A stretch of 64,000 nucleotides of DNA. It comes from Lepidodermella squamata. Its lineage: Eukaryota > Animalia > Gastrotricha. The notes below the pieces were generated by a model. It saw only the letters and a program-made list of their open reading frames with translations. It was not told where the DNA came from and ran no database searches. Within the stretch, counting starts at the first letter, position 1. Every line of letters begins with the position of its first letter. The stretch is from positions 682,001 through 746,000 of the forward strand of contig JBLDXI010000030.1 of NCBI GenBank assembly GCA_047495785.1, given 5' to 3'. Of the stretch, positions 3,955-48,400 are shown piece by piece. The translations under genes and the position numbers were made by a program.

Positions 3955-5248
3955 CTATCCATACATCAGCTGCTTATTAAATGTCCCAATTCGCTGTCGA
4001 TTATCAGGGCGGCGTGTTTTCCACCAGAACCGCCAACTATTGCTGAAACCAGGCTTGAGGCTGGCAATTAAACTCGAGAGGAGGTTCTCGAAAATCACGC
4101 AAAAAACGCCGCCCTTGTGAAACCACGAGTTGCCCAAGCTCAGCCCTATCCCCTCGTAGAAAATGTGCAGTAGAAACAGGAAAAACAGCGGTAGATGGAA
4201 TAGGACAAAGCAAAGGAACAGCGCTATTGACTGCTTCACGAAAAACATCTCCCGTTTCCGCCAATCCGCCGAAGCACTGAACGACCTACCGCTGACACTC
4301 GACGTTCGAACTGTCATCTGCGTTACATAGACCTTAGCTTCAGCCTGGCGTTTCACCTCTCGAATTTTCGCAAAAATCTTCCAGTAATTCAACGCCAACA
4401 TTTTAGCCGGTACACCAATAGCTATACAGTAGTAGACAAAGATGATTAACGATGTATCGAGGCCGCTTCCAATGTCGTAGTAGTAGCAAGTGCAAATAGG
4501 AACGGCCGTTCCATTGTTCACGCCGGGTATAGAAATGTTGAATACACCATAAGTCCTTCGAGGGTAGATGCCGATGATGAAAGTCATGAATCCGCAACCG
4601 AAAAATAGAGCGACAGCCATAATCACCAGCTGAAAAACAATAGAAATTAGATTCGACCTAATTTATGGACAAAAATTCAATTCGACCTAGTTTGGGACAT
4701 TTCTGAGAAAATCGCGGAGACGTATTTTCCGGCCATTTTTGAATATATTGCTCAAATCTCACCTTCAATGTATTAGCGCGGTATTTCGGTGAATTTGACA
4801 GGACGCAAATTCGTCGTTCGTAACTGATGAGCATGTTCATGAAAGTTCCGTAGATTCCCGACGATAACAGCGTCCAAAATATACCGACACAAGCAGCATC
4901 TCCAGCCTCCCAGAATCCTGTTTTCAGCGTCAACAGTTGGGCTATCGTGAAGAATACGGCATAGACAACATTTCTTGCGAACGAAATTGTGCTGAGGACA
5001 AGGAAGTCTTTTTTCACTCCTCGGTTTTGGTATAGGTAGAAGTTACCGATGCTGCAAAGTAGGACTAATATGCTCGAGACTAGAAAAGGAATAGCTATGT
5101 GCAGACGATCTTCCAGACTTATCTGGTCCAAATCATGGAACCAGCCTATGAAATAGGGCCTAGGTTCACTGTAGCCTCGGCCTGGTATGAGAGTTCTTAT
5201 CCAAGCCCCGTCAATGATAACTCCGCTCAAGCTAGAATTGTTAGCCAT
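3955..5248 (-). CDS. Divergent class-A-like 7TM receptor, copy 1 (2 exons: 5248-4763, 4629-3955)
   Basis: Seven hydrophobic segments, TM3 Cys and ISYERR (DRY-like), ECL2 Cys (VPICT), ADWRKREMFFVKQS; GT-AG intron 4762-4630. Confidence 0.8.
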
Positions 5249-5758: not shown

Positions 5759-7263
5759 ATGATTTCGATGAAATTAGCCTGTTACCTGGTGAGATGGAAT
5801 TTTTCTCGAATTACAGCGAATTACTCAAATTTTTTAATTTTTAGGTTATTGCCGGCATTTTAGCAGCGATCATTGATCAAACTTCAGGCTACACAATTTA
5901 TAAAAAGTGCTACTCGAATAAGGAATGTACGGATGAGAGGACTTACTGCAAAATAGCCTCAGCTTCATGCGGAGCCGGCATTTGTTCATGCTATCCTGGG
6001 CACATGTGGAATTCAGAGCGAAATACGTGTCTCAAAGGTAAAATCATACTTTAATTCTAAAAATTCGAATAAAATAATTATCCCAATTTCGTAAATCCCA
6101 ATTTTAGATTTTATTCACCATTTTCTCAATTTTTTAAGTTATTTAATGAGGAACAAATTATGAATGGATATGAAATGATAATCTTTATCATTTCCTTAAA
6201 CATAAATTGGGCCTCTCATGAGGTAAGATTTGGGTTTGGTCAAGATATAGTGTTAGTTTTAGTTTTAGGGTTAGGGTTAGGGGCTGTGGCTGTATGGATA
6301 GGTTCAGGGTTAGGTTAGGGTTTAGGGTTAGAGCTTGAAAGGTCCTCTGATTGGAAAAGTTTTGACATTACGAATGTACTATCGAAATTGGAAAATTCAA
6401 ATCAAATTAATGGCAAAAAAGTTATCAGATTTTGCATGTGTTTGCTTATTAAAGCCTTGACGGTGTACGGGCGCTGCGGTGGCAACGATAGCTTTTGCTT
6501 CATGGACAAGAATATCTGCTACCAAGGCTACTGCATCTGCAGTTTCGCGTTCACGCTATCAGGCGATTACAAATGCGTCTCTCGCGTTGCCATCCGAAAC
6601 TTCGGAGACCAGTGCTTTGACCCAAACGAATGCAAAGAAGGCATGCAATGCATCAACGACCACTGCAAGTGCCTGCCTGGATACACCAACCCGCCGGAAG
6701 CAAGCGAACGTTGCCGCCCTGCTCAGCCGGGCGACAAGTGCCAGAACGATACTGATTGCCAGTTTGCAACGAATACAAAATGTACGAATGGGAAATGCAA
6801 CTGTCAGTCTGGTTACAAGCAAATCGCCTACAACTACCAGCCAAGCCCATTCGAGTATCCGAAGTCGAAAACTGTTTGCATTAAAGAGAGCGGTGAGCTT
6901 GAGACTTAGATTCACGACATCTCCAATGATTAGAACTTCAACAGAAAATGCCGTAGCGGAGAGCAAGCCGTGCAACATGACCGATTCCTATTCTCCTCTT
7001 GGCATGTATTACTGCCAGAAGCCTACTGTTTGCATTCGATGCGACGTGGACACGTATCGCTGTGCTCGTAAGCTCCACCTTAAATTTCAATTAATTATTG
7101 CTGAAATTCTCAAACAGGACTGTCACCGCCTTATCAGGAGGTTTACTACTCTCCGGAGCAGTTGGCCTACTACTACCAAATGCAGAAACAAGGAGCTGCC
7201 GATTTAGCCCCGAGCCTTGTCGCTACTTTGTTGCTCACCTCACTTATCAAGCTCAATATTTGA
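5759..7263 (+). CDS. Secreted, probably GPI-anchored Cys-rich protein with EB/EGF-like modules (5 exons)
   Basis: Spliced model MISMKLACYL|VIAGILAA...; repeats such as GDQCFDPNECKEGMQCINDHCKCLPGY and GDKCQNDTDCQFATNTKCTNGKCNCQSGY; hydrophobic C-terminus LAPSLVATLLLTSLIKLNI*. Confidence 0.75.
6230..6332 (+). repeat. Degenerate TTAGGG telomere-like tract inside an intron
   Basis: ttagggttagggttagggg...ttaggttagggtttagggttag. Confidence 0.6.
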
Positions 7264-7393: not shown

Positions 7394-8012
7394 TCAATGG
7401 CAACAGCAGTCTCCTACACTACCAGCGCCATTTGCGTGCGAGTAAGATAGCTGATCGTCTGTTCCGAAGAACACAAGGTACCCGAGACCGAAGCCCAAAA
7501 CAATGACCATAAGCAAGATGGTGTTGTACGTCATTAGCACAAGCATAACCAGGTAGCCAATGACAATCTGAACCAGGTAGAGGAGAAATATTCCGCCGAG
7601 AAGCATCTGAGATTTCCTGAAAAAACACGTAAATACTGCAGTTGGTCAAATTTCAGTTCGAACCTTGAATCTTCAGAGCTAAGAGAAGATCTGCCGAGCA
7701 GTGCTTTCCGATTTGTATTTAATATTAAACGGAAATATTTCGCGGCTTCGTATGAGAAGGCCATTAGGCAGATTGCGACAACGGAGCCCCAGAAAGCTAC
7801 GTAAGATCATGGATTACAAGGTATCACAGAATTTTCTCGAGAAGCAAACCTACCTCCATCGGAATCAATGGTCCAACCATCGAAAAGTATCGGGGTACCG
7901 TCGTAGTTGTTCCCGAATGACATCTATAGAAGAGACAATGGTAAACATTCCACCTTAAGACTATCCTCACCATCATAATTTGGTTTTTCGTAGCATTGCA
8001 GACGCACTCCAT
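7394..8012 (-). CDS. Ctr/SLC31 copper transporter A (4 exons)
   Basis: MECVCNATKNQIMM|MSFGNNYDGTPILFDGWTIDSDG|AFWGSVVAICLMAFSYEAAKYFR...GYLVMLVLMTYN (MxxxM), GxxxG in TM3, C-terminal DCCCH. Confidence 0.9.
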
Positions 8013-8080
8013 GTTTTCTGGGTCAAATTTTAAGATGACCTAAAATTGAAAAGTATAGCTATTTTAATTCATTTGCTTGT

Positions 8081-8707
8081 TTAGTGACAGCAGTTGTCGC
8101 TGTTCTGTGCATTCGATGAAGATTTGGCCGAATCGTCGCTGATTTTAGCAAATGAGAAAATCACATTGCCAACGGCGTAACCCAACACAATCGCAATGAA
8201 TAAATACACATTATATGTCATTGAAACAACCATGAGTAGGTAACCAATCAAAATTTGCGCCATGTACAAGAAAAGGGCTGCTGCGGTGATAAATGGCCGA
8301 TAAAGGTAGTTTTTCCTATATGAATTGATGAAGTTTTTGAATCAGAGGGTTATTTAGGTGAAATTACGTTGATTTATCTTTTCCAGCTATTAATCGCTTG
8401 TAGGTAATGTAACTCCTCGCGGCTTTAGCTGCTTCAAATGCGATGCCCATGAAGAAAATTGCGAAAAAGCTACCAGCAAGGTCTGAAATCGCGAATTCAG
8501 TCGCGAAAATGTCTTAATTTGGGTCGTAACTTACCTGATCCCGATCGAATCACCCAACCTTGGAATAGGATGACCAAGTCTTGATAGTCCGTTAAAAAGG
8601 TTAGCTATATCACAAATTTAAATTAGAATTGACGATTTTGACGCAAAATTGAAACTTACTGGCATCACCACATTAACTCGCATTGTACAATCGCACTCAG
8701 AGCTCAT
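8081..8707 (-). CDS. Ctr/SLC31 copper transporter B (4 exons)
   Basis: MSSECDCTMRVNVVMP|LTFLTDYQDLVILFQGWVIRSGS|...GYLLMVVSMTYN...GYAVG...DNCCH. Confidence 0.88.
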
Positions 8708-8767
8708 TTTTGAGGTTAAATCCTACGTCAAAAGAAAATTTCAAATTTTCAATACTTTCATTGATTC

Positions 8768-9384
8768 TCAAAAGCTGTTCACAGTTGTCGCAGGTTGGCA
8801 GCATTTAGCTTCTTCGCTTACTGATTGGCTTTTCTTCAGAAGAACTTCCTGTTTAGCAGATCGTTCTTCTATAAAGAAAAATATGGCGAAACCAGCCATT
8901 AGACCAACAATCACGGTGAAAAATAGAGGGATGTTGTAGGTCATCACAACGAGCATGATAAAGTATCCGAGCGTAACTTGGCAACAAAACAGGATGAAAC
9001 TAAGAATACGGATGCCGAATTTCTGCATTAAGGAATAGCTTTTCGAGTCATCCTTCTGTCGAGCTTCGACGGCACTTCGAATGAATTTGAACACCTCGTA
9101 GAGAATGGTGATGAGCAGGACAGCAACCATGCTACCCCAAAGACCTAGGTCAGAGTTTGATTTAGGAAAAATATTGGGGGAAATTTCGCTAACTTGACTC
9201 AGAGCCGATGACCCAGCCGTCGAACAGAATCGGGAGACCATCAGGGAAGAAGTCGTTGGTCAAATCTGACGTGAAAGTCATCTGTTTCGGGAAAGCTTCA
9301 ATGTACCATGGATAAAATGGGAAATGTCAATAACTGAACCTGCATGAAGTACTTCTTCTCCACTTTGCACGAACAATTAGACAT
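8768..9384 (-). CDS. Ctr/SLC31 copper transporter C (3 exons)
   Basis: MSNCSCKVEKKYFMQ|MTFTSDLTNDFFPDGLPILFDGWVIGSES|...YEVFKFIR...GYFIMLVVMTYN...GLMAG. Confidence 0.88.
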
Positions 9385-9675
9385 TTTTGAAGTTGCAAGT
9401 TCAGAGATTTTGAACTAGAAATTGCCAAAATGAATGCAAATAAGGTTCTTAGTGTGGCTTTTATGCCGGCAACGGACCTTGATGAGTAATTCTTGTTCAA
9501 ATATTGCCAGGCGATGCTTCAACCCTGAGTTCATTGAGATAAGGCTAGGTCTATAATCTTATCTTGATACGTGACGGCAAGCTTAGAGATATTAGCTACG
9601 CATTTCGAAATTTGTTTATTGCAAAACCTAATTATCGGACAAAGACAGTCAGAGGGCGAAAATTGTAGTACGGCA

Positions 9676-10955
9676 TTAAGTTGTTGAGAATGGAGAAACG
9701 GATTCAACAGCAATTTTCCGCTGATTCCTACATCTGAATTTGTCAGTAAACCCAGGCCGCAGGATTTGAATGATTGGAGCTAACATTAATTCAACAGCAA
9801 AGATTGTTACGGCCGCTTTGTTAAACCAATACGTCAGGTATTGGGGGCCGATGTCGCGGTAGAGAGCTGTGAAAATTGAATGCAACAAACCAGGCTGGTA
9901 ACACACAAAAAATGTTACGACGGTCGCGAACGACTGCTTCAAGAAAAACAATTCGCGCTTCTTCCAATTCGCCTTCCGTCTCACTGCCGTATGACCCAGA
10001 GTGCCGCCTACCGACTTGATTTTCTGATGAATTTTTCTATAAAAAAATGAAATTTATTTGAGGAATGTGCTTGTGAACTAGTTCCTATTTCAAGATGACA
10101 GGTAGCAGTTGCAGTAGCAGTTGAGGTTCAAATTACGCTGGCATAAGTCCAATAATGGGGAGGCGTATAAATAGTTTCCTTACCTGAAGTTGTAAATCAT
10201 TATCGCTGAGCAGAAGACAGTAATAGAAGTGCCCATTAGCGACGCAATCATAGCAGTATCCAGATCCCAAAACAGATGGCTTTCCCAGACAGCACAAACT
10301 GGGAAAGCTGTATTGTTGCTCAATTCAGGTAGACGAATCATTCTCAATCCAAAATTTCGAAAGGGATAGACGCCGAGAATCCCCATTGCAATTATGCATA
10401 AAACACAGAGTGAAGTTAGTCCGAATATGACCTGAATAACCAGACGTAAAAAGATATTCAAATTTCTCATGGAGAACTCACTTTCTTCTTGTTGCTCTTC
10501 TGTTCAAGGCTGTTCGAAACAACACAAACTCGACGTTCGAAGCATATCAGAGTAAGAATTAAGAAACCGACCGCACTTGTAATGTACATCAGCAAAAGAA
10601 ACGCTATACATGAAGCCTCGCCCAACTCCCAAAAGCCTGTAGGCAGAGCTATGAGAATGCCTACGAGCCAAACCGCAACATAAACCACACCGGACACATT
10701 CAATGCAGCGAGAAGAATGCGGAAGTCGAGCTTGACTTCTTGTTTTCGGTAGATTATAATATTTCTTATATTCGATGCACTTACGATGAGGAAAAGCAGA
10801 GAAAATGGAACGGCGAACTTGACGCGGTCCGACAGCGTGTTGGATCTCAAGTTATGAAGTAGGCCCACAAAATACGGTCTTGGTCCGTCGAAACCGCGGT
10901 CGGGTAGATCGACCGATATCCAAGAATCGCCGATAATTTCACCCGTAAAATTCAT
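9676..10955 (-). CDS. Divergent class-A-like 7TM receptor, copy 2 (3 exons)
   Basis: Starts MNFTGEIIG at 10955; DRGFDGPRPYFVG, ICFERR, PVCAVW, ANWKKRELFFLKQS, APIIQ. Confidence 0.82.
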
Positions 10956-11625
10956 GAAATTCAGACAAATGCGGAGCAGAGATGAGTTGGTTTGCTTCTG
11001 ATAACTGATAAGCTGCACAGCCAATTATACACGGTCGCGATTCAATTAACTTAGTGCGAAAACAGCGTTCGAGATCGGGATGAATCCTGCTTTCTACGCT
11101 GATTAACTGAGGCGTGCGAAAGGGGAACAACAGTAAGAGACTAATTTACGCTTCCGTCTCTTAGGAGCTGTTGTCCTCTGGAATGCATGAGACGTGGGTG
11201 GCCTCACACATCAATTACAAATTGTTACTTCTTGTTATTTGTCCGGTTTTATCCCATGGGCGTCAGGCGATGGGAGATGGGAAAAATGGTATGATGAAGC
11301 GTGCATCACCGGAGATCGAATGAATTTATAATTGATGTTGATTGAGCGGATCAATTAAAAAGTCAAAGCAGGTTTAACAATGTCGTCGAATTTGTCCAAA
11401 GACATAATTTTGCTGTGAATGTCTGTGAATTTGTCGAATTGTCGTACCTATTGCCAAACCGTTATGAATTCTCAAACACAATTTTGAACAGAATCGGAAC
11501 ACTTTCGTTCGTTTTTCACCAACAACTTTGAAGGATGACAAATTGGCTATCATTCAGATACGGAGCCCGGTCTAATCGAGATCCGAGCGATCTGAGATCC
11601 GAAAATTCTATGCAGAAATTGCAGA

Positions 11626-12725: not shown

Positions 12726-13958
12726 TTATGCTTTCATGAAAGCTTTTAATTGTGTACTGCTTGCTGACTGGTTAGTTGAAATTGGCGACGGACATTCTGC
12801 AGCAACTTTACGCTGCATCCTGCGCTTGAATTTGTTAGAGAAACCAGGCCGCAGTATTTGGATGATAGGGGCGAATATCAATTGAAGTATGAAGATTATC
12901 ATCACGCCCTTGTTAGACCAATATGTCACATATCTCGGGCCAACTTCACGATAGAAAGCTATAAAGATTAACTGAATTAAAACAGGCGGGTAAAACACGA
13001 GAAAGGTGATGAAGGTAGCCAGTGACTGCTTCAAGAAAAACAATTCCCGCTTCTTCCAATCAGCCTTTCTATGCGCAGCGGCCAGAGCCCATGCGTAGCT
13101 AACCGACCGGATCTTCCCATATATTTGCCTGAAAATTGACGATCGAGAGTTAGTCTTGAAAAAGCGGACATGAGAATCTTACTTGAAGTTGTAAATCATG
13201 ACAAGTGAGCAGGAAATTGTAGCTGCACCGCTCGAAAGCGCAAAAATAGCAGCAGTGTCCACGTCCCAGGCCACATGGCTTTCCCAGCTGGCGCAAACCG
13301 GGAAAGCCGTATCGTTGCTCAGCTGAGGTAGGTGAATTAGTTTCACCCCGATATTTCGAAAGGGATACACGCTGAAAACTCCCATTGCAAGCATGGAGGA
13401 AACGTAGAGAGAAATTAGCATGAAAATGATCTGAAAAGGCATTAATCACAATCTATTCAACTGTTGGAAAATGAGCTCACATACCCTCTTTTGGTTGTAC
13501 TTCTGGTCGACGACGTCCGATACCACGCGAATTCGGCGTTCGAAGGTTATGAGAGTTAAAACAAAGAAATTCATGCCAGCCATGGCATAGATTAACCAAA
13601 GAAGCGTAATACACGAAGCGTCTCCCAATTCCCAATAGCCGGTCGGCAGAACTATGAGGATGCCCATTAGGTAAAGCACGGCAAAAAGCATGCTGGACAC
13701 ATTCAATGCGGTGACTAGAATGCGAAAGTCTAGTTTGACCTCTCGTTTTCGATATAACACAATATTTGCGATATTTGTAGCAATTAAGATGAGTGTAAGC
13801 AAAGAAAATGGCGCGGCGAACTTGAGACGGTCAGAAAACGCGTTGGATCTCAAGTTATGAAATAGACCTACGAAGTAAGGCCTCGCTCCAGCAAAACCAC
13901 GGTCGGGTAGATCGACCGATATCCAAGCGTCTCCGATTATTTCACCCGTAAGATTCAT
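12726..13958 (-). CDS. Divergent class-A-like 7TM receptor, copy 3 (3 exons)
   Basis: MNLTGEIIG, ARPYFVG, ITFERR, PVCASW, FFLKQS, YWSNKG, APIIQ. Confidence 0.82.
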
Positions 13959-19635: not shown

Positions 19636-22600
19636 TCAACGCATTTGCGGAGGCCTACTGCCCTGGCGCGCTAGATGGTGCCGACTATTTGTTACAACAT
19701 CATCGATCATCGAGTAGTTACTACCACTCGGCTGTTGGCTTTGCCGCTCGCTCTCATTCAAGTACCGCGTCTCAGATCTCAGCCGAGTGGGATGAGATTC
19801 AGCAATTACTGGCAATGGTCCATGGTGTATATGTACAGGGTCTTGTTGTTGAATCTCTGTCCGCCTAGCAGCTGAGCGTGACCTCCGCTCCCTCATCGAG
19901 TAATTACTCCCGCTAGACTGTTGGCTTTGCCGCTCGCTTTGATTCAAATAACGCGTCTCGGATATCAGCCGAGGAGGCTGGGATTCTACTATCGCTGGGT
20001 CCACAGCATTCGGTTGTTGAGATTGGCTGCGCCGAGCTGCTGACCTCCTCTCCCTCGACTCTTCCCTCGAAGATTTCGAAGAGGCGGATCTCAGAACAGG
20101 AACTGGAGCGTTTAGTTCAGAATTTGTCTCCTCAGCAGTCAGAGATGGAGTTATTTCTCGAGATTCCTTAATGAAGCGACGCAATAGCCGCAACTTGGCC
20201 ACATCTTCGAATTCATCGACAATCTTCTCGCGACGTGGTGATCCAGCGGCATTGCTCATAATTTCAAGGTCCTCCCGGATCGGGTGCAGAGGTCGCTCCT
20301 TTCGAGTGACTCCCTCTGCTGTGGGGCCGGAAGATGATGACGCATTTTCAACCTTAATCTCAGGGGCAAGTTTTGGAGTTAGGACCGTAGTATAGTAGTA
20401 TTCCTTTTCCTCCTCTTTCGTCTCGGTTTTGATGTTCATCATTTCGCAGCAAGTCTTAGAAATCGGGCCAAACTGGCACAAAGCAACTGGTAGAATGATC
20501 ATCATGAAGAAGATCCCAGAGCAAACAGCGATGAAGAAAACCCGGAAGAATGAGTACAACGTATAATTGGGCGATACAGACAGGACGATGACAGATAATA
20601 TAGTGCCGCAAGCAGCTGGCCCCGTCTCAGCAATCAGCTCGCCCAGAAGATGCCTCGCCTTCCGGTATCGAATTACAGAAGCTTTTAGTGGCAATTCGTC
20701 CCCAGGCTCTGGCTCGACTTCAATCACCGTGAACGTGTAGATGCAGTGGCAAATGTAGTCCGAAGTCGCGCCAACTGACATTAGGATCCAAATCAAAGTG
20801 ACTGGGTCGAGACTCACGTCCCACAGCGTCATTCCAGCTAGGGTGAACACCATATTCGAAAGCGTTGGGACTGTCATCCAGAAAATGCATATCGGGTGAG
20901 GAATCATTATCAGAGAAGTCACAACTGTCGCTGCAACGGTAATTAGCGAAAAGTAAACGAATTGATACGGCATGCTGACGACTTGATCGAAGAATCTCAG
21001 CATCTTAGTTGGATCGGTTAGGTACATGTGGAAGCCGGGTTCTTTCTCGTAGCCGCTTTGGAGATCTTTCAGGCGTTCGGCCAACTCCGCCCCTCGCTTC
21101 AGCTCACCGACGTTCATCATTTGGAAGATGTTCAGCGCAACGATACGCTCGTCTTCTCGACCAACGCCGACGATTCTCGGCCTACGGCGCACGTCATCGG
21201 TTTTATCGGCAATGTATTGAACAGCTGCGACGAAATCGTCCGTAAGGTTGTAAGGCACCTTGACGTCTCTGAACGGGACTCGGTTGAGCTTTGGCCCCCA
21301 GATGTACATGTCGAAAGACTCGATTTTCTCTGCGATTTCGACGATTTTCTCCCGAATTTTCGTAAAGTTTCTGTCGTAATTCAGGGTTTCGAAATCGAGC
21401 AGCATTTGAACTTGAAAGTACTCGACAAAATATCGGAAATACTTCCAATCTGCTAGTTTGTACGGGTATGTGTTGGATCGTATATTAGCCAATCTAGCCG
21501 GGTGGAAGCCGATTGAAATTTTAGTCCATATCACATAAATAGCTAGAGAGAGTAGCACAATTAAACCGATTAGAACAATCACGCGAGATATAGGATGTAG
21601 CAGCTTTGGCGCAACGTGCTTCGAGGCCAAGACTTTGCCACTTGAGAATTCGGTATAATTTTCAATATGGTCATGTTCGTTGTATTGCGAAGTGACGTAC
21701 ACCGAAGATGCCTCAGATTTAGCTATTGTAGCTACGTTCACATACACTTCAGGCTCCGGCTCTTTGGAAATTTCTTCTTCCGAAGGCTGAGATTCCTTAG
21801 TTTTTTCCAAGCGCCCGTAGCTGCAGCATAAGACTCGACAATCAGACATTTGCAAGATATCTAAAAAAGCAATCAAAATTGGAATTGTTATGGGTGCAAT
21901 CTTTTTTACGATCTCAGGTTTTTTTAAATTTTTAACCTTTCACTAATGTTTTCCCTTAAATTCGAGCTAGAATCATGAAGTAAATTCCCAATTACTAGTT
22001 TTCAGTTCATATATAAAACGTAATTGAGTACAAGTACTTTTTACAAATCAGTATAAAACGTAGTCAGTTCGCATGAAAATGGTCATTGGGGAAGTGCAAG
22101 GGCACAAAAGTCGAGCTTTGTTAAACTTCGAAACCATTGCCGACATTTTCGGCGGTTTCAGAAATCAACAGGGTCCTCACCGTGTTGAATTTTCCAACGA
22201 GAGTCAGAAAATGGGGAGGCCCCTAGCGTATAAAGCCCCCTCTGAGGGCCTTATGGCCCTAAGGCAATTGCCTTGTTAGCCTGATGGAAAACCCATCACT
22301 GGCCGAACTAATCCTTATCCTAACCCAAACCCAACGCTGAACCCTAAACCGAACCCTAAGCCTAGTACCCAGCCCCAACCTCTCACCTCAATTTCCAATT
22401 AATGAAAAAATGTGTAAGGTTATTCCGTCACACATATGCGTGAAAGAGCAACTTTATGATTAGTTATTAATTTTTAAGAAAAGCTCACTTTCATGTGTCC
22501 GCTTTGGAACAGGCAGGCAGCAGCAACAGCACGAATGGAATTTGCCCTTATCTCCCTTATCCGACATGACGACCAGAGCTACGAAAATTGTCATTTGGAG

Positions 22601-25359
22601 CACAAAGTCATAGCCTAGAACGAAAAGTGCGAAATTCGAATAGGTGTTGATGGCCGGGAAAGGGGCAGATGTGCTGATGACAAAGTCCAACTGGGTCATG
22701 ATAACAGTCACGAAAATTGATGTGCCGCCCTCCAGCATCATTAGCTTGGCTCGTTCTTCTCGTGGAAGCCGAGGATCAGTATTGTCCCATGCGTTGATAA
22801 GGATGAACATGTCATCAAGACCAATGGCTGCAAAAAAATGTAGATTATCCCAGAAATTCTCAGATTTTTCCAAAATAATGGGAAGATTTCTGTTCAATTC
22901 GAATCATCTCTCGTTTTTTTAAAAATTCTAAACAATTTCGAAATTCTGAAAAATTCCATAACGAGGAATAACTCCAAAAAGAGGACAAATACGAAAGTTC
23001 TCTTACCTAGGGCCATTAAAGGGACAGCGATCAAGACATTTTGCATAGCGTCACCAAAATAGAACCTGCACCCGAACCCAGCACCACACGATGTAAGGGT
23101 GCACATGATGCCAGCAATGCCGTGCCACGGTTTCGAATTGACAACATCGCTGTTCAACGCACCGACCATGCACCAAATGAAGACGCACAGAAAGGTGATG
23201 CCAACTTTGGGCAGCTCTTGGAAATAGATCAACCGGGTAAACTCTTCATCTGTCTGGCCGTTGATCTCCCAGTACACGTTGATGTACTTAAGCTCTTTGT
23301 TAACTTCGCGTAGAAATTTTGACAGCTTTTTCTCGCTTTCAAACGTTTCGTCGATCCACGGTAGGTTGTAGTAGAAGTACATGGCTTTGATCTTGCTAAC
23401 TAGCGAGTTGTAGCCGTTTTTGTCGTCGGTTCGAACAACCCCGCCTAACATGTTCGAAAAACTAGTCTCACCGGGTAATCGGTAATCAGCCGGGTAAGTG
23501 ACATATTGTAGGAACGATGACATTTCATTAACGTCTGTGAACATGGTCTGAGTTGTAGTCACTTTGTCTATAAAACCAGCCTTCAGAAAATTCAAAAAAA
23601 TAATTATAAAAAAGCTGAACAATAACTTGAAGCTAACTCACGTCCTTTTTGAATTTTTGAACACCCTGCGCGACTTCAAACTGAAATTTAAAAAAATGCA
23701 TATTGTTTCAATGACATTTCACTGACAATATTTTAATAAATTTATAATAAAGAAAAAAGTTAAATTGTCAAAACGAATTCTATACCAATTTCAAAAATTA
23801 AAGATTAGTAAACTTACGAAATATACATTTTAAACGAACCAAATAAAAAATCCAAAATATCAGATTAATTTAATTTCAAAAAAATAATTGGAAAATTCCG
23901 CTGAATTGTGAAAATTAAAAAAATTAAAATCGCTGAATCGAAATTCACCTTCATTCGAAGAATGTCGCTAGCTTCACAGCAATAAAGCCTAGTGGCCTGG
24001 TTTGTCCCATCGTCCAAATCACAGCGTAACAGCTCGCGAATTCTATATACCAGTGAAAACATCTCCATGATAGTGTCGTAATGAATCAGCGTATCGTTTT
24101 TCGCCTCGACAATCATACTCTCCCGTCGCCAGTTGTCCCAATATCGGCAATGGAAAGGATTCGGGTCACTTTCGACAGCTCGCCTTCGCCTTAATATCGC
24201 TTCCTCTCTTTCCTTCTCCTTTTCCTTCGCTCGTTGTAGGACATCACGTTTCCACCTTATCGATCTAAAAAGAAAAGGAGTATTTTAATTTCATTGTGAA
24301 ATCAAAATGCACCAATGACTGCTCTGGACCACCAAGTGTTACCGATAAAATAAAAAACATTACCGGAAAGGGGTATGGAGGAGTACTACTAGTATGAACG
24401 GGGACCTCTTAGTTTCTTTGCGTTGGGTTGCAATCACAAATAAATGTACTAGAACAAAGCACAATCGAACTTTTTCAAATTCCTATCAACCTTGGATATA
24501 AGTAATTTCAACTTTGTGTAAAATCATCCTCAGGAATTGGTTAAACCTGGGTACAGAGCGCGAAGTGCAGGTTGGAATGGCGGTATCGTGTCCTCAGTTC
24601 GCGAGGCCAAGATGGAGAACCCCAAAAACCCAAGAGGATACCTTTTGGTCACAAAATTTGAGCCCAAAAATAGTTCCAGGGTCCTATTTACCGCACTGCC
24701 TGGGTGATGATTAAACTCGTTATTGTAATAATAATTTCAATTGTGTAATCGCAACTCTGCAACAAATAATTAGAAGCAATTTGTGATGCGGAAAAAAGCT
24801 AACAATAAAAGCGGAATTCTTCAAAGTATTGAATTATAAATTCTCACTTCAAATCGGCCTCGGGAGGGTTGACTAGGGCAACAGTTTTATTGACGTTCCA
24901 ATAATACTCGGTCGCGTTGAAAAAATCGCCAACGATATCATCGTCCAGATAATAACGGCTGTCAACCTGAACAAACTGGCTGATAATATCGCCAGTCGCG
25001 AATGTAATCTTAGTCAGACCGCTGAGACCAGCAGCGGCCAGGCCAATGCCGAGCAGCATGAACAGCCACGGCACTTTACCCATCATGTAGCCATAGCAGC
25101 CGAAGCACCACGACACGAAGTCTGGGATAATTCGATAGGAAAATGACGGGAGAGCAGGCCAGCCGTATTCGTGATGGCCATGCTGGTGGTTGTGGTTATG
25201 CTTCTTCTTATTCTTTTTAGGGGATTGGCTTGATTGAGATTTAGCATCGGCGTCATTTTCAACGGCTTCGATTATCACAAAATCCGTGGCAGGGTGTTCA
25301 CGTTGCTTCGAGCGGATTGAACTAGCCGTGTAGGAACTGGCTATCTTAGCCGTAAACAT
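19636..25359 (-). CDS. Patched-related (PTCHD/PTR-like) sterol-sensing-domain RND membrane protein, paralogue 1
   Basis: Multi-exon; SSD motifs SKPWHGIAG, AIGLDDMFIL, EGGTSIFVT; second TM bundle SLDPVTLI...SVGATSDYICH...FFRVFF. Confidence 0.88.
22310..22385 (-). repeat. Degenerate CCCTAA telomere-like tract inside an intron
   Basis: cctaacccaaacccaac...accctaaaccgaaccctaagcc. Confidence 0.45.
24554..24698. mobile_element. hAT-like MITE, family 1 (intronic)
   Basis: CAG...CTG ends, flanks CCTGGGTA/CCTGGGTG; aligns to the reverse complement of 28747-28902. Confidence 0.8.
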
Positions 25360-32759: not shown

Positions 32760-35700
32760 TCAAGCTGCCGTGTCCCTTGTCGATCTTCTTTGCTGCCTCG
32801 GAGTTGTCAAATCCGCGTTTTGCCCAGACCGCCTTGGGCTCAACACATTTTGCGGAGGGGTCGCCGGTCCCCTACTGCCCTGATGCGATAGATGATGCCG
32901 GCTATTTGTTGCAACGTCATCGATCATCGAATAATTGCTTCCGCTGGGTTGTTGACTTTGCCGCTCGCTCTCATTCAAGTAACGGGTCTCGGATCTCAGT
33001 CGAGGAGGTTGGGATTCAACGATAACTGGTAACGGTCCTGGGTCCACAGCAATCGGTTGTTGAGACTGGCTCCGTCGAGCAGCTGAGCTTGACCTCCTCA
33101 TCTCCCTCGACTCTTTTCTCGAAGATTTAGATGCCGACCTCAAATCAGGAACTGGAGCGTTTAGTTCAGAATTAGTCTCATCAGCAGTTAGAGATGGAGT
33201 TATCTCTCGAGATTCCTTAATGAAGCGACGCAATAGCCGCAACTTGGCCACATCTTCGAATTCATCAACAATCTTCTCGCGACGTGGTGATCCAGCGGCG
33301 TTGCTCATTATTTCAGCGTCCTCCCGGATCGGGTACAGCGGTTTCTGTTTTCGAACTACATCTCCCTCTAATGAAGAGCCGGAAGTTGATGACGCCTTTT
33401 CCACCTTAATTGCAGGAACAGGTTTTGTAACCGTGACGTAGTAGTACTCCTTTTCCTCCTCTTTCGTCTCGGTTTTGATGTTCATCATTTCGCAGCAAGT
33501 TTTCGAAATCGGCCCAAACTGACACAGAGCTACAGGTAGAATGATCATCATGAAGAAGATCCCAGAGCAAACAGCGATGAAGAAAACCCGAAAGAATGAG
33601 TACAAGGTGTAATTGGGCGATGCAGACAGGACAATAACAGATAAAATGGTGCCGCAAGCAGCTGGCCCTGTCTCAGCTATCAGCTCGCCCAGCAGATGCC
33701 TCGCCTTCCGATAACGGATCACAGAAGCTTTCAAAGGCAATTCATCTCCAGGCTCGGATTCGACTTCAATCACAGTGAACGTGTAGATGCAGTGGCAAAT
33801 GTAGTCCGAAGTCGCGCCAACTGACATTAGGATCCAAATCAAAGTGACTGGGTCGAGACTCAAGTCCCACAGCGTCATTCCAGCTAGAGTGAACACCATA
33901 TTAGCCAGGGTCGGAACTGTCATCCAGAAAATGCAAATTGGGTGAGGAATCATGATCAGGGAAGTCACGACTGTCGCTGCTACGGTGATTAGCGAAAAGT
34001 ACACGAATTGGTACGGCAAATTGACGACTTGATCGAAGAATCTTAACATCTTAGTCGGATCGGTTAGGTACATGTGGAAGCCGGGTTCTTTCTCATAGCC
34101 GCCTTGGAGATCTTTCAGGCGTTCTGCCAACTCAGCCCCTCGCTTCAACTCACCTACATTCATCATCTGGAAGATGTTCAAAGTAACGATGCGCTCGTCA
34201 TCTCGACCAACACCAACGATCCTCGGTTTGCGGCCCACGTCATCGGTTTTATCGGCAATGTACTGAACAGCAGCCACGAAATCGTCTGTTAGGTTGTACG
34301 GGACCTTGACGTCTCTGAAAGGGACCCGATTGAGCTTGGGTCCCCAAATGTAAGTGTCGTAAGACTCGATTTTCCCAGCAATTTCAACAATTCTCTCCCG
34401 GATTTTCGTGAAGTTTCTGTCGTAATTCAGGGTTTCGAAATCGAGCAGCATTTGAACTTGAAGCGGCTCCACAAAGTCTCGGAAATACTTCCAATCAGCT
34501 AGTTTGTACGGGTAGGTATTCGACCTCACGTTAGCCATTCTAGCTGGGTGGAAACCGATGGAAATCTGCGTCCAAATAACGAAAACCGCGAGGGAAAGCA
34601 GCACAATCAGCGTGATGAAGACAATGACTCGAGAGATAGGGTGCAATAACTTTGGTGCCACGTGTTTTGATGCCAAGAATTTACCGCTGGAGAATTCTGT
34701 GTCATTTTCAAGGTCTTCGTGTTGAACTTGGTATTCGGTTGACTCGTAAATTGTAGAGACATTAGATTTTGTATCAGTCACCACGTTTGCGTAGACAACG
34801 GGCTCTGGCTCTTTTGACACAACTTCATCTGTTGGGGGTGGATCTTTCTTATCCTTTTCCAATCGGCCATAGCTGCAGCATAAAACTTGACAGTCGGACA
34901 TTTCCAAAATATCTTAAATTCATACAAAATGTTTAGAAAGAATTATAATAAAATATAAATCCTCACTTTCATGTGTTCGTTTTGGAACAGGCAAGCAGCA
35001 GCAACAGCACGAATGGAATTTGCCCTTATCTCCCTTATCCGACATGACGACCAATGCGACGTAGATTGTCATTTGAAGGACAAAATCGTATCCCAACACG
35101 AACAGCGCGAATTCCGAGTAGGTATTTATTGCAGGGAAAGGCGCAGATGTGCTGATGACAAAGTCCAATTGCGTCATAATGACGGTGACAAAAATTGACG
35201 TGCCGCCCTCAAGCATCATCAGCTTGGCTCTTTCTTCTCGCGGGAGCCGAGGATCAGTATTGTCCCATGCGTTGATAAGAATGAACATGTCATCAAGACC
35301 GATAGCTGCAAAAAGACAAAAAATCAGTAAATTTCGAAAAAATTCCCAAATATTGTCCAATTATTTTCCAATGTTCCAAATAATTTCTTAACGTTTGAAA
35401 AAAATTCAAATTTTTGAAAATTATTCTAAAAAATTTTAAAAAGCCGAAACTCAAAATAATGGGAAATAACAGTTTTTTAAGAAAATTCTGGAAAGAAATC
35501 CACAAAATTCTCTTACCAAGGGCCATGAGAGGGACAGCCACCAAGAAAGTTTGCATAGCGTCACCAAAGTAAAACCTGCACCCGAAGCCAGCACCACACG
35601 ATGTAAGGGTGCACATGATGCCAGCAATGCCGTGCCACGGTTTCGAATTGACAACATCACTGTTCAACGCGCCGACCATGCACCAAATGAAGACGCACAA

Positions 35701-37677
35701 AAAGGTGATGCCAACTTTGGGCAGTTCTTGAAAATAAATCAGCCGATTGAACTCTTCATCCGTCTGGCCGTTGATCTCCCAGTACACGTTGATGTACTTA
35801 AGCTCTTTGTTAACTTCGCGCAGAAATTTTGACAGCTTTTTCTCGCTTTCAAACGTTTCGTCGATCCACGGTAGGTTGTAGTAGAAGTACATGGCTTTGA
35901 TCTTGCTAACTAGCGAGTTGTAGCCGTTTTTATCGTCGGTTCGAACAACCCCGCCTAACATGTTCGAAAAACTAGTCTCGCCTGGTAATCGGTAATCAGC
36001 CGGGTACGTGACGGATTGTAGGAAAGATGACATTTCGTTCACGTCTGTGAACATGGTCTGAGTTGTGGTCACTTTGTCGATAATTCCAGCCTTCAGAAAA
36101 GTTAACAACAATAAACAAATTAAATATGACTGGAGGTTCACTCACGTCCTTTTTGAATTTTTGAACACCTTGCGCGACTTCATACTGCAAATACAATATT
36201 TTTATAAATTAATAATAAGGAAAAAAGTTAAATTGTCAAAAATAATTCTATACCAATTTCAAAAATTAAAGATTAAACTTACGAAATATACATTTTAAAC
36301 GAACCAAATAAAAAATCCAAAATATTAGATTAATTTAATTTAAAAAAAATAATTGAAAAATTCCGCTGAATTGTGAAAAATTGATAGAATTAAAATCTCT
36401 GAATCGAAATTGACCTTCATTCGAAGAATGTCTCTAGCTTCACAGCAATACAGCCTGGTAGCCTGGTTTGTACCATCGTCCAAATCACAGCGTAACAGCT
36501 CGCGAATCCTATATACCAGTGAAAACATCTCCATAATTGTTTCGTAATGAATCAGCGTATCGCTTTTCGCTTCGACTATCATCCCCTCCCATCGCCAGTT
36601 GTCCCACCGTTCGCAATGGAAAGGATTCGGGTCACTTTCGACAGCTCGCCTTCGCCTTATTTTCGCTTCCTCTCTTTCCTTCTCTTTTTGCTTCGCTCGT
36701 TGTAGGACATCGCGCTTCCATCTCGTCGATCTAAATGACAATTATTGAAACATTTAGGCTCCTGGGTCTTGGGCTTCAAAATTTAAATTTTTAGACGCTG
36801 GCCATAATATAGCTGACCGCCTATAATTTAACGATATCTAGAAAATCGAAAGCTAAAGCTCCATGATTTTTAGGAAATTGTCAACAAATTAGAGTAAAAA
36901 TAATTTTCACAAAAGAGTCTGAGATTTTTTAATTAAAATCCTAAATTTTCCACAAAAATTTGAAAATAATATAAATTCTGAAAAAATGTTTTAGATTAAT
37001 TCCTTGAAATTAAAATAAAAATTTCAAGAATTTTAAAAATTCATATCCTGTTTGGAATTAAAAAAAAAATAAAAAATATTTTCTAAAATGCACTTGAAAT
37101 TTTGTGAATAATTTATGTTTTTCAGTAAATTCGAAGAAAAATTATGGAAATTTTACTTTATATCGGCGTCGGGAGGGTTGACGAGGGCAACAGTCTTATT
37201 GACCCGCCAATAGTACCATCCGGTCGCGTTGAAAAAATCATCGACAACAGCATCGTCGATAAGATACCGGCTATCAACTTGAACAAATTGATTGACAAGA
37301 TCGCCGTTTGTTATCGCGAATGTAATCTTAGTCAGACCGCTGAGACCAGCAGCGGCCAGGCCAATGCCGAGCAGCATGAACAGCCACGGCACCTTACCCA
37401 TCATATAGCCATAGCAGCCGAAGCACCACGACACAAAATCTGGGATGATTCGATAGGAAAATGACGGGAGAGCCGGCCAGCCGTATTGGTGATGGCCATG
37501 CTGGTGGGTGTTGCGATGCTTCTTCTTCTTCTTAGATGACTGGCTTGATTGAGATTTAGCATCGGCGTCATTTTCAACGGCTTCGATTATCACAAAATCA
37601 GCAGCACTGTTGAGCTCTCGCTGCTTCGAGCGGATGGAACTGACTGAGTAAGAACTAGCTATCTTAGCCGTGAACAT
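32760..37677 (-). CDS. Patched-related SSD/RND membrane protein, paralogue 2
   Basis: Same exon layout and motifs as paralogue 1; start MFTAKIASS at 37677. Confidence 0.88.
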
Positions 37678-41503: not shown

Positions 41504-44500
41504 TCAAAATTTCAGCAGATCCGATGTTTGAACGAATCGCCTATAGTATTCCCGATTCTGCTGCAAAGCCGCTGTCGAAGATGGGATTCGGCTGTTAGTT
41601 GCTTCATCCGTTACCTTAGCATACTCATGGTTCGATTGGCTAATCACATTTTTTACCGCCAGGTCATTAGTTCCAAGTTTTCCGACATCCTCGCGACAGA
41701 TGCCTTTTGAGCGTGGCGTTCCATCGTATGTGTTCTCAGACATGGTTACGCCTTTGAAGCTATTCGAGCCAACAAGGTGCCTAGATTGCCGGATAAAGCG
41801 ACGTAGTAACCGCAACTTGGCGATATCCTCATACTCATCCACGATTACTTCAACTTTCGACGAGTTTCCAGCGTTACTATCGAGATCAACTGTAGGCGGT
41901 TTTTGCACATGAACTCCCTCAAATAACACCGAATCGCTCGACTCTGTTTCGATTTTCTTTGTTGGTTTTAAGGGAACAGGATCAATGGGTTGAACTTCAT
42001 AGTAGTAAATTTCAGATTTAGCATCTTGTTCCAGATTTTTTCCTTCTTTTTGAGCCTCGCAGCAAGTTTTCGCAACTGGCCCGAATTGACACAGGGCGAC
42101 CGGTAGAACTAGGATCATGAAGAAAAGCCCAACAACCACGGCGATGAAAAATACCCGAAAAAACGAGTACAGCGTGTAATTAGGCGAGGTTGATAGGACC
42201 ATAGTCGTTAGAATCGTCCCGACAGCTGCTGGCCCAGTTTCCGCTATCAACTCCCCTAGCAATATCCTAGCTTTTTGATACCTAATTTCGGCCCATGTAG
42301 AAGGAGCAGTGCCATTCTTTTCCGGCTCGACTGTCGTGAAAGTATAGATGCAATGGCAGATATAGTCAGCAGTCGCGCCAATCGACATAAGGATGTAGAT
42401 CAAGGTGATCGGGTCCAAAGAAACGCTCCATAGAGCCATACCAGCTATCGTTAGGAGAATGATAGAAATCGAAGCCAAGGCCATCCAAAACATGCAAATC
42501 GGGTGTGGAATCATGATTAAAGACGTAACAACCGTTGTCGCCACTGTGATGAGCGAAAAGTAGATGAATTGACTCGGTAAATGCACAATTTGGTCGAAAA
42601 ATCGCAGCAGCTTTGAGTTGTCTGTTACATAGACGTGAAATCCTTTCTCAGACTCGTAGGCTGATTGAATCTCTTTGAGACGCCTCGCCAACTCTGCCCC
42701 ACGCCTCAGCTCGCCAACATCCTTCATCAGAAACGTATTAAGGCAAACGATTCGTTCATTCTCTTCTCCAGCAGCTATGATTCTCGGCTTTAAATTGATG
42801 TCGTTCGTCCTATCAGCTACATATTGAACTCCATCCGTAAGAGACCGAATCCCACGTCCTTTGATCTCAACATCGCGAAATGGGACTTTATTGAGCCGAC
42901 TCCCCCATATAAAGGCATCGATCCTTTCGATTTTCTCAGCAATTTCAACGACTTTCCCTTTGATTAGGTGAAAATCACGGTCATAGAGCCGTGTTTCGAA
43001 ATCGATGAGTATCTCAACGCGGTTGTGTTCTGAAAAGTAGCGGAAGTACTTCCAGTCGGCCATCTTGAAGTCGTATGTATTCGAAGCCATGCTCGCTAAT
43101 CTAGCTGGATGGAAGCCAATATCGAGCTGTGTCCAAACAATGACTAAGGAAGCTGCGAGGGATGCCACGAAGGTAATAGCCACAATCACTCTACTGATCG
43201 GATGTAGAAGGGCGGGAGCTATATGGTTGAAAACCATCCATTTCCCGCTTGAAAATTCGTTCCCGGTTTCTAAATTATTCTCCGGCAGCTCCATCTTACT
43301 CTTGATATTTTGGTATATTTCCTCCGTTTTTGGAGGTTTTTGTTTCTCGAATTGAACACGGCCATAAGTGCAACACAATACAAAGCAGTTTGGCCACTTG
43401 ATGATTCCTAATCGAACCGTATCAGAGTTATAAGTTCAATTATCTTAGCATTAACTTACGCTTTGAAGTCCTTTTCCTCAATTTGATACAACTACAGCAA
43501 GAATGGCTCGTTGATTTTTCGGTTTTATCTGAAAAGACGATACAAGCCACAAAAATTGTCATTTGAAGGAAGAAGTCGTAGGCCAGAACGAGAAGGGAAA
43601 AGTTCGAATAGGTCTGAATCGCAGGAAATGGCGTGCTTGTCCCGATGAAGAAATCAATCATAGTCATAATGACTGTGACAAAAATCGAAGTCCCTCCTTC
43701 CTGCATCATAACCTTCGCTCGTTCTTCTCTGGGCAGTTTAGGATCTGTATTAGCCCAAACGTTCATCAGAATGAACATATCGTCCAGGCCAATAGCTAAA
43801 TGAACTCAGAAATAAGGATTGAAGGGCTTGAAATCGTAGCTTACCCAAAGCCATAATCGGGACTGCAACTAGAAAAGTCTGCATAGGATCTCCCAAGTAG
43901 AATCGAACTCCAAACCCTGCTCCACACGCTGTCAGCGTGCATAAAATCCCAAGAATGCCATGCCAAGGTTTCGAGTCGAGGGCATCGCTATTCAAAGCCC
44001 CAATCATGCACCAGATGATAACGCAGATGAACGTAATCGCAACTTTAGGCATCTCCTTGTAGAAAATCAACCGATTGAATTCATCCTCAGTTTGTTGATG
44101 AGTTTCCCAGTAGATTTTGATGTATTTGTAGGTATTTTTCGCATCAAGGAATTTTTCGCGAAGTTTAGCCTCTGCTTGCAGGGTCGCTTCAGTTGAGGGT
44201 AATGAGTATTGAAATCTGACTGCCTTCACAGAGTTGATTCTTGAATTGTAGCCGTTATGAGGATCAGCGAGCGAGACTCCACCTAAAGAATTCGCGATGT
44301 AAGTCTCCTGAGGGAATTCCTTGAAAGCTGGGAAGGTCAGTTGCTCGAACAGAGAGGCAAGTAAAACTTCATCCGAGATCTTTTTCCTATCGAACGTCTT
44401 TGCATGGTCGAAAATCTCGTTCTGGAAAAATAATTAAGCTGGAGTTTACTGAATATCGATTAATCACTCACGCTGAATCTGAGTAAGTCCCAAGTATCGC

Positions 44501-45116
44501 AGCAGTAGACTCGTTTCTCTTTATCCTTGCTTTGGTCATCCATATCACATTTTAGAGTCTCCCGAACCATGTAGACAAAGCTGAACGCTTCTTTCATGGT
44601 GTCGATTGTAGCTAGTGTGTCGTTCTTCGCTTCGACTATAATCGATAACCAGCGCCATGTTGGAGAATGCCAAGATTCACATCGAAAAGGTGACTCTTCT
44701 GTCGTTGTAGTGGTCGTCAAATTTGGCGGTTTAGTGTTTGATTCCCGCTTCCATCGTGATGATTCCAGGGCACCTTTCTTCGGCCTAGCGTCGACTCGTC
44801 TCCCGTGCGTCCAATACAGATGGCTCGTCGCATTTCTGAAATCCCCGTGAATATCGTCATCGATGAAGTAACGACTTCCTTCTTCCAGAAATTGGCTTAT
44901 CAAGTCACCATTTGATAGGGCGAAGGTTATCCGGGTTAAACCACTCAGCCCTCCAGCAGCAGCGATTAAACCGAGGGTAAGGAAGAGCCACGGAACTTTG
45001 CCCATAGCGTAGCCATAGCAACCGAAGCACCATGCCACAAAATCTGGCAATATACGATAGGTAAAGGTAGGAAATTTCGGAAAACCGAAATTTTCTTCGC
45101 CTATTTTAGTTGACAT
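41504..45116 (-). CDS. Patched-related SSD/RND membrane protein, paralogue 3 (more divergent)
   Basis: SKPWHGILG, IGLDDMFIL, EGGTSIFVT, SIGATADYICH; compact introns. Confidence 0.88.
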
Positions 45117-45431: not shown

Positions 45432-48400
45432 TTATTCCGTTGATCGCTTCGATTGAACCTCAATTTGACCAGCGTGGCCGTTTATGTGGACCAAATCGCC
45501 TGTCCTGATCAAATCCGTAGCTTGTTTACAGCCAACAAGGCACGGTAGGCCGTATTCTCGAGCTACAACAGCTCCGTGGGAAATGAGGCCACCCAGCTCA
45601 GTGACTAGGCCAGAAATCATCGGGAAATAGGGCGTCCATCCAACATCAGTGTAGGGTACAATCAAAATGTCGCCAGGTTGGATTTGGTTGGCATCAGCTA
45701 AGCTTTTCACGACTCTAGCTGTACCTTCGATGCATCCATTTCCAACAGCCAAGCCTTTGATAACAAACTTCTCTCCATCATCCCGAGTTATAGGCCGTTC
45801 AGGTTTCAACTGTTAAAGTAGGGAAATAATTCTCAAAAATCAGGCAAAATTCCAATACATACCGGTTCCGGATTGCCGTTCTTAATCTCAGCGAATTGGA
45901 AGGTGCTGAATTTCGGGAACAGTTTCCTACGTCGAAGAGCTTTCGCAATAAGCTTCGGTGACCTCCTGACCAAAAGGGACTCCAACTCCTCAGGTGACAG
46001 GAAGAACAATAGGTCAGTATCAGGAAGATTGCCTCGCTCGGTTAGAATAACAGCCAAGCGGCGGTAGATGCGTCTGAGGTGGTCCATTTGCATGATGCTG
46101 TAAGATTTGGCCCATTCTCGGAGACCGACAGCCTCACGAGCTTTGGGCAGGAAATACTTGATGACCATGCGTTGAATGCCGTTCAAAGGAGTTTTTATAG
46201 ACTCCAAAGATTCTTCAATGCTCAGCATTTTCTTGTCACCGTGGATCGTCGTACCAGCGTTAGATGAAATCATAACCTTCAGGGCATCAACAACCTTTTC
46301 TGGCTCTTCAGCCCAAGACAGTTCACGCATATCAGACTGTAGAAATTCAGCGAAAATTAGAAGAGGATGGAAAGTCATCCCTAAAACTTACATCTCGGAC
46401 ACATCGATGGCCGTGTTTCTTGATGAATTTTTTGAACAGCTTGCCGTGTTCCTTCGACTCATCGGAAAGCAGCCACTTAGCAGCGTCCAAGCGTTCCATG
46501 GCCATGAATCCATCGGATGTTCCCTCATCGCTCTTGATCGATGCAGCGATAGCCTGCAGCTGAGTGGGAACATCGGCTGAATAGACGTCAGTGCAGGATG
46601 ACAGCAATGTTGCCATATCTTCGTAGATTCGTAGATCATCCCGAGTTATAGGCCGTTCAGGTTTCAACTGTTAAAGTAGGGAAATAATTCTCAAAAATCA
46701 GGCAAAATTCCAATACATACCGGTTCCGGATTGCCGTTCTTAATCTCAGCGAATTGGAAGGTGCTGAATTTCGGGAACAGTTTCCTACGTCGAAGAGCTT
46801 TCGCAATAAGCTTCGGTGACCTCCTGACCAAAAGGGACTCCAACTCCTCAGGTGACAGGAAGAACAATAGGTCAGTATCAGGAAGATTGCCTCGCTCGGT
46901 TAGAATAACAGCCAAGCGGCGGTAGATGCGTCTGAGGTGGTCCATTTGCATGATGCTGTAAGATTTGGCCCATTCTCGGAGACCGACAGCCTCACGAGCT
47001 TTGGGCAGGAAATACTTGATGACCATGCGTTGAATGCCGTTCAAAGGAGTTTTTATAGACTCCAAAGATTCTTCAATGCTCAGCATTTTCTTGTCACCGT
47101 GGATCGTCGTACCAGCGTTAGATGAAATCATAACCTTCAGGGCATCAACAACCTTTTCTGGCTCTTCAGCCCAAGACAGTTCACGCATATCAGACTGTAG
47201 AAATTCAGCGAAAATTAGAAGAGGATGGAAAGTCATCCCTAAAACTTACATCTCGGACACATCGATGGCCGTGTTTCTTGATGAATTTTTTGAACAGCTT
47301 GCCGTGTTCCTTCGACTCATCGGAAAGCAGCCACTTAGCAGCGTCCAAGCGTTCCATGGCCATGAATCCATCGGATGTTCCCTCATCGCTCTTGATCGAT
47401 GCAGCGATAGCCTGCAGCTGAGTGGGAACATCGGCTGAATAGACGTCAGTGCAGGATGACAGCAATGTTGCCATATCTTCGTAGATTTGCGGCCCCCAGT
47501 CTGTAGATTAAAATTAAAATTAATTTTCAATTTTAATAATTTAAATTAATTCAAATTGTTAATTAATTTAATTAATTTTGATTTGATTATCAATCAGGTA
47601 ATGAATTAAGTTAACTTTTTTAATTTTTATCACTTACTCAAAGTGCTATCAAGAGTGTTCATGATAATCATGGGGTACATAGTTGCGAGAGTTGACAGAC
47701 GGATGTGTTGTAGCCACGTCTCTCTCAGAAACGCCAATGACTCCTCAGCTTGCTTGAACAGCTCAACAGGGTCAGTCGTGGAAGGTATCATGAAGCTCTC
47801 AATCCGTTCAGTGAGGTCTTTCATGCCATTGTGAGGGAACAGCCGCTGCCTCCATGCGAACAAGGAGTCAACTTTCTGCCAGAACGGGCTGCTCATGTCG
47901 TTTTGCTCGATAAAATTCTCAAACGAGAATTCATTCGTTTTTCGCCCGAAAAGAGCCATGTCACCAGAAATTTTTCCGAACTCGTTCGTCATACCACTTC
48001 CGACCATCTGAGGAACAATAAATTTCGGTAAAGTATCAAAACTGAAGTAGGTATATTACCGTCCAATTGATGAAAACATGTTGACGGCTCACTGCCATTA
48101 ACCGCGTGATCTCGAATCTTTGCCGTGGTTTGATAAAAATGCTTCTCTGGTTACACTCCATCGCGTGTATCATCGATCGAAGCCAAACAACGCCGGCGAG
48201 CGGCGACAGAGCGCCAGGCATCATTTCTTGCACATTGGCTGTTGTTATCCATTCTTGGTCGCTGGCAACAGGCGTATCGAACTCCTGCAGCAATTCCCAT
48301 TCTTGCTCCATATCGGCGGTTGTAATCGGGCGAGCTTGCAGGATCAAGATATCAAACTCGCCATTTGGGTGCTTCTTAACAGCGAACTCAACATCTCGAC

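Follow-up and report, generated by a model that had tools for sequence, protein, structure and literature searches.

Polycistronic gene clusters and Ctr-type copper transporters

The spliced-leader operon is a mechanism already known from other animals. In C. elegans, SL2-type operons are polycistronic clusters with spacers of about 100 nt, in which polyadenylation of the upstream message is coupled to the addition of a dedicated leader, SL2, to the downstream one. A tighter arrangement is encountered in the SL1-type operons of the same nematode and in those of tunicates (Ciona, Oikopleura), where genes on the same strand have almost no spacer and no more than a few tens of bases part the upstream 3'-end signal from the unpaired acceptor of the downstream gene. 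Flatworms also trans-splice.

With regard to copper import, the solved structures of CTR1/SLC31A1 (6m97 and 6m98) reveal a three-helix subunit harbouring an MxxxM motif in helix 2 and a GxxxG motif in helix 3. In S. pombe, Ctr4 and Ctr5 constitute a heteromeric copper transporter composed of two interdependent subunits (PMC2915924), which sets a precedent for different Ctr subunits in one complex. C. elegans possesses ten CTR1-like genes, among which names with shared cosmid prefixes occur (F58G6.3/.7/.9 and K12C11.3/.6/.7; PMC12829803, PMC11083455); in the literature on these nematode clusters, we found no statement calling them operons.

Here, we describe three Ctr genes, g1, g2 and g3, from the gastrotrich Lepidodermella squamata, located in a stretch of 64,000 nucleotides that was analysed as a whole (the window). 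We consider, with a confidence somewhat better than even, that the trio is an operon whose single precursor RNA is resolved by a spliced leader. Like the tunicate and SL1-type operons, it consists of same-strand genes with almost no spacer, and its whole stop-to-ATG distance is 60 to 68 bp, as opposed to the longer spacers of SL2-type operons, with which it would share the proposed coupling of polyadenylation to leader addition; no sign of a leader dedicated to downstream genes was encountered here. Its predicted spacing between cleavage site and acceptor resembles that of the tunicate and SL1-type operons more than that of the SL2-type. It differs from the former in phylum and in leader, SL1 being absent and the leader genes lying in the rDNA repeat beside 5S.

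Gene models and family assignment of the Ctr trio

The earlier note had reported three co-oriented Ctr genes, and this was upheld: all three models are intact, lie on the minus strand (Table 1) and have last exons that score above the Pfam cut-off of the family, while the start proposed for the trio, 9430, is corrected to the ATG of g1 at 9384. The genes carry two to three introns each, all of the GT-AG type and 47 to 58 nt long, with degenerate donors such as GTTCAG and GTTCGA being used in the models. The intron phases 0, 1 and 2 and a 70-nt second exon are common to g2 and g3, the third intron of which is missing from g1.

Table 1. Coordinates of the Ctr trio, its gaps and its immediate neighbours, in window positions and in the reading direction of the trio
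Feature	Position	Strand	Details
Rhodopsin-type GPCR gene, upstream of the trio, same strand	9615..11024	minus	stop 9678-9676; AATAAA 9620-9615; 7tm_1 E 1.3e-6, below Pfam cut-off
Candidate acceptor of g1	9421-9415, in 9385..9421	minus	TTTCTAG; 30 nt before g1 ATG; putative
g1, Ctr copper transporter gene	8768..9384	minus	169 aa; exons 9384-9340, 9281-9194, 9144-8768; stop 8770-8768
Gap 1	8708..8767	minus	60 bp; AATGAA 8762-8757; T-rich 8738-8730; candidate acceptor AG 8724-8723; 15-nt 5' UTR
g2, Ctr gene	8081..8707	minus	155 aa; exons 8707-8660, 8604-8535, 8482-8368, 8315-8081
Gap 2	8013..8080	minus	68 bp; AATGAA 8073-8068 overlapping ATTAAA 8068-8063; T-rich 8052-8042; candidate acceptor AG 8041-8040; 27-nt 5' UTR
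g3, Ctr gene	7394..8012	minus	155 aa; exons 8012-7971, 7923-7854, 7796-7664, 7616-7394
Two overlapping AATAAA	7375..7385	minus	start 8 nt past g3 stop; mark end of co-oriented run
Convergent gene with EB modules, downstream of g3	6388..6909	plus	PF01683 E 3.4e-12; bounds the cluster

Database searches were performed with single exons, the joined g1, g2 and g3 proteins serving for translation and local alignment only. Searched in this way against Pfam, the last exons of g1, g2 and g3 match PF04145 with E values of 5.9e-13 (50 bits), 1.1e-11 (45.9 bits) and 5.9e-8 (33.8 bits), respectively, for a curated cut-off of 25.3 bits. A profile built from these three exons aligns to the solved CTR1 6m97 (E 2.9e-11) over a region spanning the MxxxM and GxxxG helices, and each of the three translations contains both motifs, in the second and third membrane helices, respectively. 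The assignment of the trio to the Ctr/SLC31 family is firm, and its products presumably transport copper. In contrast to CTR1/SLC31A1, the trio has very short ectodomains of about 15 residues, in which a conserved N-terminal CxC and one or two Met beside helix 1 are found instead of long Met/His clusters. The C-terminus carries CCH in g2 and g3, but CCQ in g1. Pairwise identity among the three proteins is only 32% to 36%, which indicates that the duplications are old and that the copies have been kept intact. A single fusion protein made of three Ctr units was considered and rejected, since every unit is closed by a stop of its own and, with an odd number of helices, the following unit would be inverted.

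Signals in the gaps between the Ctr genes

The gap sizes given in the earlier note, 60 and 68 bp between stop and ATG, proved exact, and all the signals it had listed there, namely, an AATGAA or ATTAAA hexamer, a T-rich tract and an AG 15 or 27 nt upstream of the ATG, could be located. Its description of potential donors was nearly right. In the 68-bp gap, the AG is indeed preceded by no GT; in the 60-bp gap, two GTs are present rather than one: the first (8755-8754) would give a 33-nt intron, and the second (8726-8725) directly abuts the AG. Two further AGs (8077-8076 and 8060-8059) precede the candidate acceptor in gap 2. The hexamer follows the stop by 5 nt in gap 1 and by 7 to 12 nt in gap 2, and 21 to 32 nt separate the hexamer from the T-rich AG in both gaps.

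On the minus strand between 9700 and 7300, AATAAA occurs three times, as a pair past the g3 stop and singly past the upstream GPCR gene; AATGAA likewise occurs three times, in two cases directly after the g1 and g2 stops. Within the trio, variant hexamers are found after g1 and g2, and the canonical AATAAA after the last gene only. When a composite signal is defined as one of three hexamers followed by a T-rich AG located 5 to 35 nt before an ATG, it is found upstream of 12 of the 2177 ATGs of the window (0.55%), g2 and g3 being two of the 12, and in 1.2% to 1.6% of gap shuffles, figures that are indicative only because the rule was set after the data had been seen.

Gaps of 60 and 68 bp are too short to accommodate a promoter in addition to a 3' UTR and a 5' UTR, and this layout fits a spliced-leader operon. 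Tandem duplication alone would also account for three co-oriented paralogs, and each duplicate might be transcribed on its own, the g2 promoter lying inside g1 and the g3 promoter inside g2, so that the units overlap and a leader becomes optional; C. elegans operons can indeed contain internal promoters, and no polycistronic RNA was encountered. Against such separate transcription, only 60 to 68 bp would be left for a 3' UTR and a 5' UTR together, the low identity of the paralogs implies that they have stayed this close together during a long divergence, and spliced-leader-like genes are present in the genome (see below). We therefore regard this explanation as unlikely.

The region upstream of g1 bears on a further possibility. 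About 190 nt separate the AATAAA of the GPCR gene from the candidate acceptor of g1, leaving room for a promoter. An unpaired acceptor lies 15 to 30 nt before the ATG of each gene, and one promoter followed by one non-coding first exon, both upstream of g1, with this exon alternatively cis-spliced to the g1, g2 and g3 acceptors, would make the locus a variable-cassette gene. Donors are degenerate here, and weak GT candidates exist between 9675 and 9385; however, no strong donor was seen upstream, hexamers placed right after the internal stops would be unneeded in such a gene, and the leader genes of this genome could supply the 5' exon more simply. Alternative cis-splicing of this kind thus seems improbable.

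Under the preferred reading, that of a spliced-leader operon, the trio would have arisen by old head-to-tail tandem duplication of a Ctr/SLC31-type copper channel gene. A single promoter upstream of g1, where approximately 190 nt are free between the GPCR AATAAA and TTTCTAG, would drive the synthesis of one precursor RNA. The AATGAA/ATTAAA signals immediately past the g1 and g2 stops would direct cleavage and polyadenylation of this RNA, and a capped spliced leader would then be added to the g2 and g3 messages at the AG acceptors 8723 and 8040. The remainder between cleavage site and acceptor would measure only about 5 to 20 nt. Each message would be translated into a three-helix subunit, and the subunits would assemble into a trimeric Cu(I) pore. 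Co-transcription and leader use of the acceptors are inferred from this layout. Several points speak against the operon: the 21 to 32 nt between hexamer and acceptor are tighter than the 47 nt of another junction of this genome (thymosin/EMRE, see below), and leave almost no spacer after cleavage; the degenerate donors make a cis donor further upstream possible; and the searches for transcripts were negative (see below).

If RNA data confirm this organisation, the trio would represent a compact animal operon made of paralogs, and a locus at which spliced-leader trans-splicing can be tested in Gastrotricha. It would also suggest that a cap supplied by the leader lets a gene duplicate without a promoter and stay expressed. 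Gastrotrichs have been placed near flatworms by recent phylogenomic analyses (PMC6468455). Flatworms trans-splice, so the origin of trans-splicing in that clade would become testable.

Spliced-leader-like genes in the L. squamata genome

The genome searched comprises 121.2 Mb in 151 contigs. Its 5S rRNA sits in 8.46-kb rDNA repeats, and the spacer of the one repeat examined contains, adjoining 5S, two small spliced-leader-like genes with a common 11-nt 5' end. Their leaders, of 32 and 33 nt, both end with AG right before a GT donor, and the gene with the 32-nt leader further displays an Sm-like site (AAUUUGA) as well as a 3' hairpin. The fold energies of the leader-like RNAs are no better than those of shuffled sequences, which is common for RNAs of this length. 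At the DNA level, the pattern describing the layout of these genes, with the 11-nt 5' end, a leader of 30 to 33 nt and a GT donor, has 883 matches in the genome, compared with none for a control pattern. A third spliced-leader-like gene was noticed outside the rDNA (C9:579849-579883, minus strand); it has a 30-nt leader with the same 11-nt 5' end and is apparently single-copy when searched as an exact pattern.

A nematode origin of the DNA, or a nematode SL system, was ruled out, since SL1 is absent by both approaches used: no Rfam match to nematode SL1 was obtained among the 50 candidates scored, and the SL1 22-mer had no match with up to two mismatches across the 121 Mb. The trans-spliced operon put forward in the earlier note is partly supported, by the short gaps, 3'-end signals and unpaired T-rich acceptors as well as by the leader-like genes of the genome; it is not the nematode system. 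A junction layout as in the Ctr gaps is present in a cluster of thymosin, EMRE and NIPSNAP genes, where TTTTTAG lies 47 nt past an AATAAA and only a short 5' UTR comes after it. The L. squamata genome paper (PMC11660948) makes no mention of trans-splicing, operons or introns, and our literature search retrieved no relevant paper linking gastrotrichs with spliced leaders or trans-splicing.

A pattern search of the genome also revealed 25 dispersed places where the 3' end of the leader is joined to other sequence. Among the dispersed copies examined, one has coding sequence for an AP-type endonuclease, whereas several more belong to multi-copy families, so that they look like LINEs. LINEs with a leader at their 5' end are known around the spliced-leader genes of other organisms. 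The dispersed copies would fit APE-type LINEs living in leader genes, and may borrow the promoter of the leader gene. We had considered leader-bearing retrocopies as a proof, at the DNA level, of mRNA trans-splicing, but these LINE-like copies are not decisive in this respect. Two related copies (L103, C4:2310306, and L111, C4:1119447) carry different 5' leaders, of the 33-nt type and of a diverged 32-nt type, respectively, joined at different offsets to homologous bodies; a further related copy, L107, encodes an AP-type endonuclease.

Searches for transcripts

Several collections, which may omit records from the genome itself or from near relatives, were searched for expressed sequences of the trio. 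A word search with the last exon of g1 gave no match, and an exact look-up of the g1 genomic open reading frame was likewise negative. An HMM search of 1.84 billion representatives returned no transcript of L. squamata, the best relative of g1, g2 and g3 being only 35% to 41% identical. A 31-nt pattern covering the junction of the g2 5' UTR and coding sequence was absent from metagenome contigs.

Leader-bearing messages of other genes were sought as well. A search based on hsc70 yielded nothing above 79% identity, the exact thymosin and EMRE sequences were absent from the collection, and the sole EMRE relative was 46% identical and came from another organism, its contig being devoid of the leader. 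A degenerate leader pattern produced chance matches in metagenomes, except for two leader-like sequences (L028 and L043), both internal to their contigs.

That neither word nor HMM searches found a transcript-derived protein for g1, g2 or g3 would be in line with g1 alone being expressed, g2 and g3 being silent or decaying copies separated by signals that arose by chance. However, all frames are intact, MxxxM, GxxxG, CxC and CC(H/Q) have been kept despite identities of 32% to 36%, and the composite gap signal is rare, which together make silent copies very improbable.

Related Ctr genes

The closest protein found by the HMM search (P0008) is encoded on L007, an environmental contig of a related animal. 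Its gene immediately follows another Ctr gene there, with a gap of about 100 nt and an AATGAA overlapping the stop. The ectodomain layout of this relative is that of the trio. In the tandem pair (L007, 4206-5486), which two Neur_chan_LBD genes adjoin, only the first gene is interrupted by introns; these number three and have the same phases as those of g2 and g3, the first of them being of the GC-AG type. The members of the pair are each other's closest relatives, which indicates that tandem duplication with tight spacing recurs in the lineage. Elsewhere in the L. squamata genome, at least five more Ctr exons are present, four on contig C42 and one on contig C17, none of them in a comparably tight array. 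One of these is the closest paralog of g3.

Possible assembly of the Ctr products

The earlier note had further proposed that the trio encodes a heterotrimeric channel. This was left without support, as MxxxM and GxxxG are kept in every paralog and no sign of interdependence was detected, and the idea is speculative. With both motifs present in all three proteins, each of them could form a homotrimer, and the trio differs in this respect from S. pombe Ctr4-Ctr5, whose subunits depend on each other. A more elaborate scenario, in which the operon would have grown by duplication of a promoter-less cassette (acceptor, gene and 3' signal) and its products, made in fixed proportion, would co-assemble as a heterotrimeric copper channel, is improbable. 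Were it true, the locus would be an animal operon encoding the subunits of one complex, from a phylum for which our literature search retrieved no report of trans-splicing.

Other features of the window

Pieces of rhodopsin-type GPCR genes with weak 7tm_1 matches are found at 3955-5248, 9676-11024 and 13446-13958, on the minus strand, which is also that of the Ctr trio. More generally, most large open frames between 3955 and 50929 lie on this strand. An Rfam scan of the window gave no match.

Three paralogous large genes are present on the minus strand at 19636-23544, 32760-36054 and 41504-45116. Each is made of three consecutive open frames of about 216 to 253, 112 to 122 and 596 to 737 aa, the large frames being without Pfam match, and the flanks are similar between copies. 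A candidate 43-nt junction (32760/32714) was ruled out as 3' UTR. At 45833-47438, a unit is present in two copies about 858 bp apart, with identical flanks and overlapping frames on both strands (134 aa on the plus strand and 181 aa on the minus strand), and resembles either a tandemly duplicated stretch or a repeat element. Finally, an exon on the minus strand at 48442-49302 strongly matches the AMP/ATP-binding domain of pyruvate phosphate dikinase (PPDK_N, E 1e-53).
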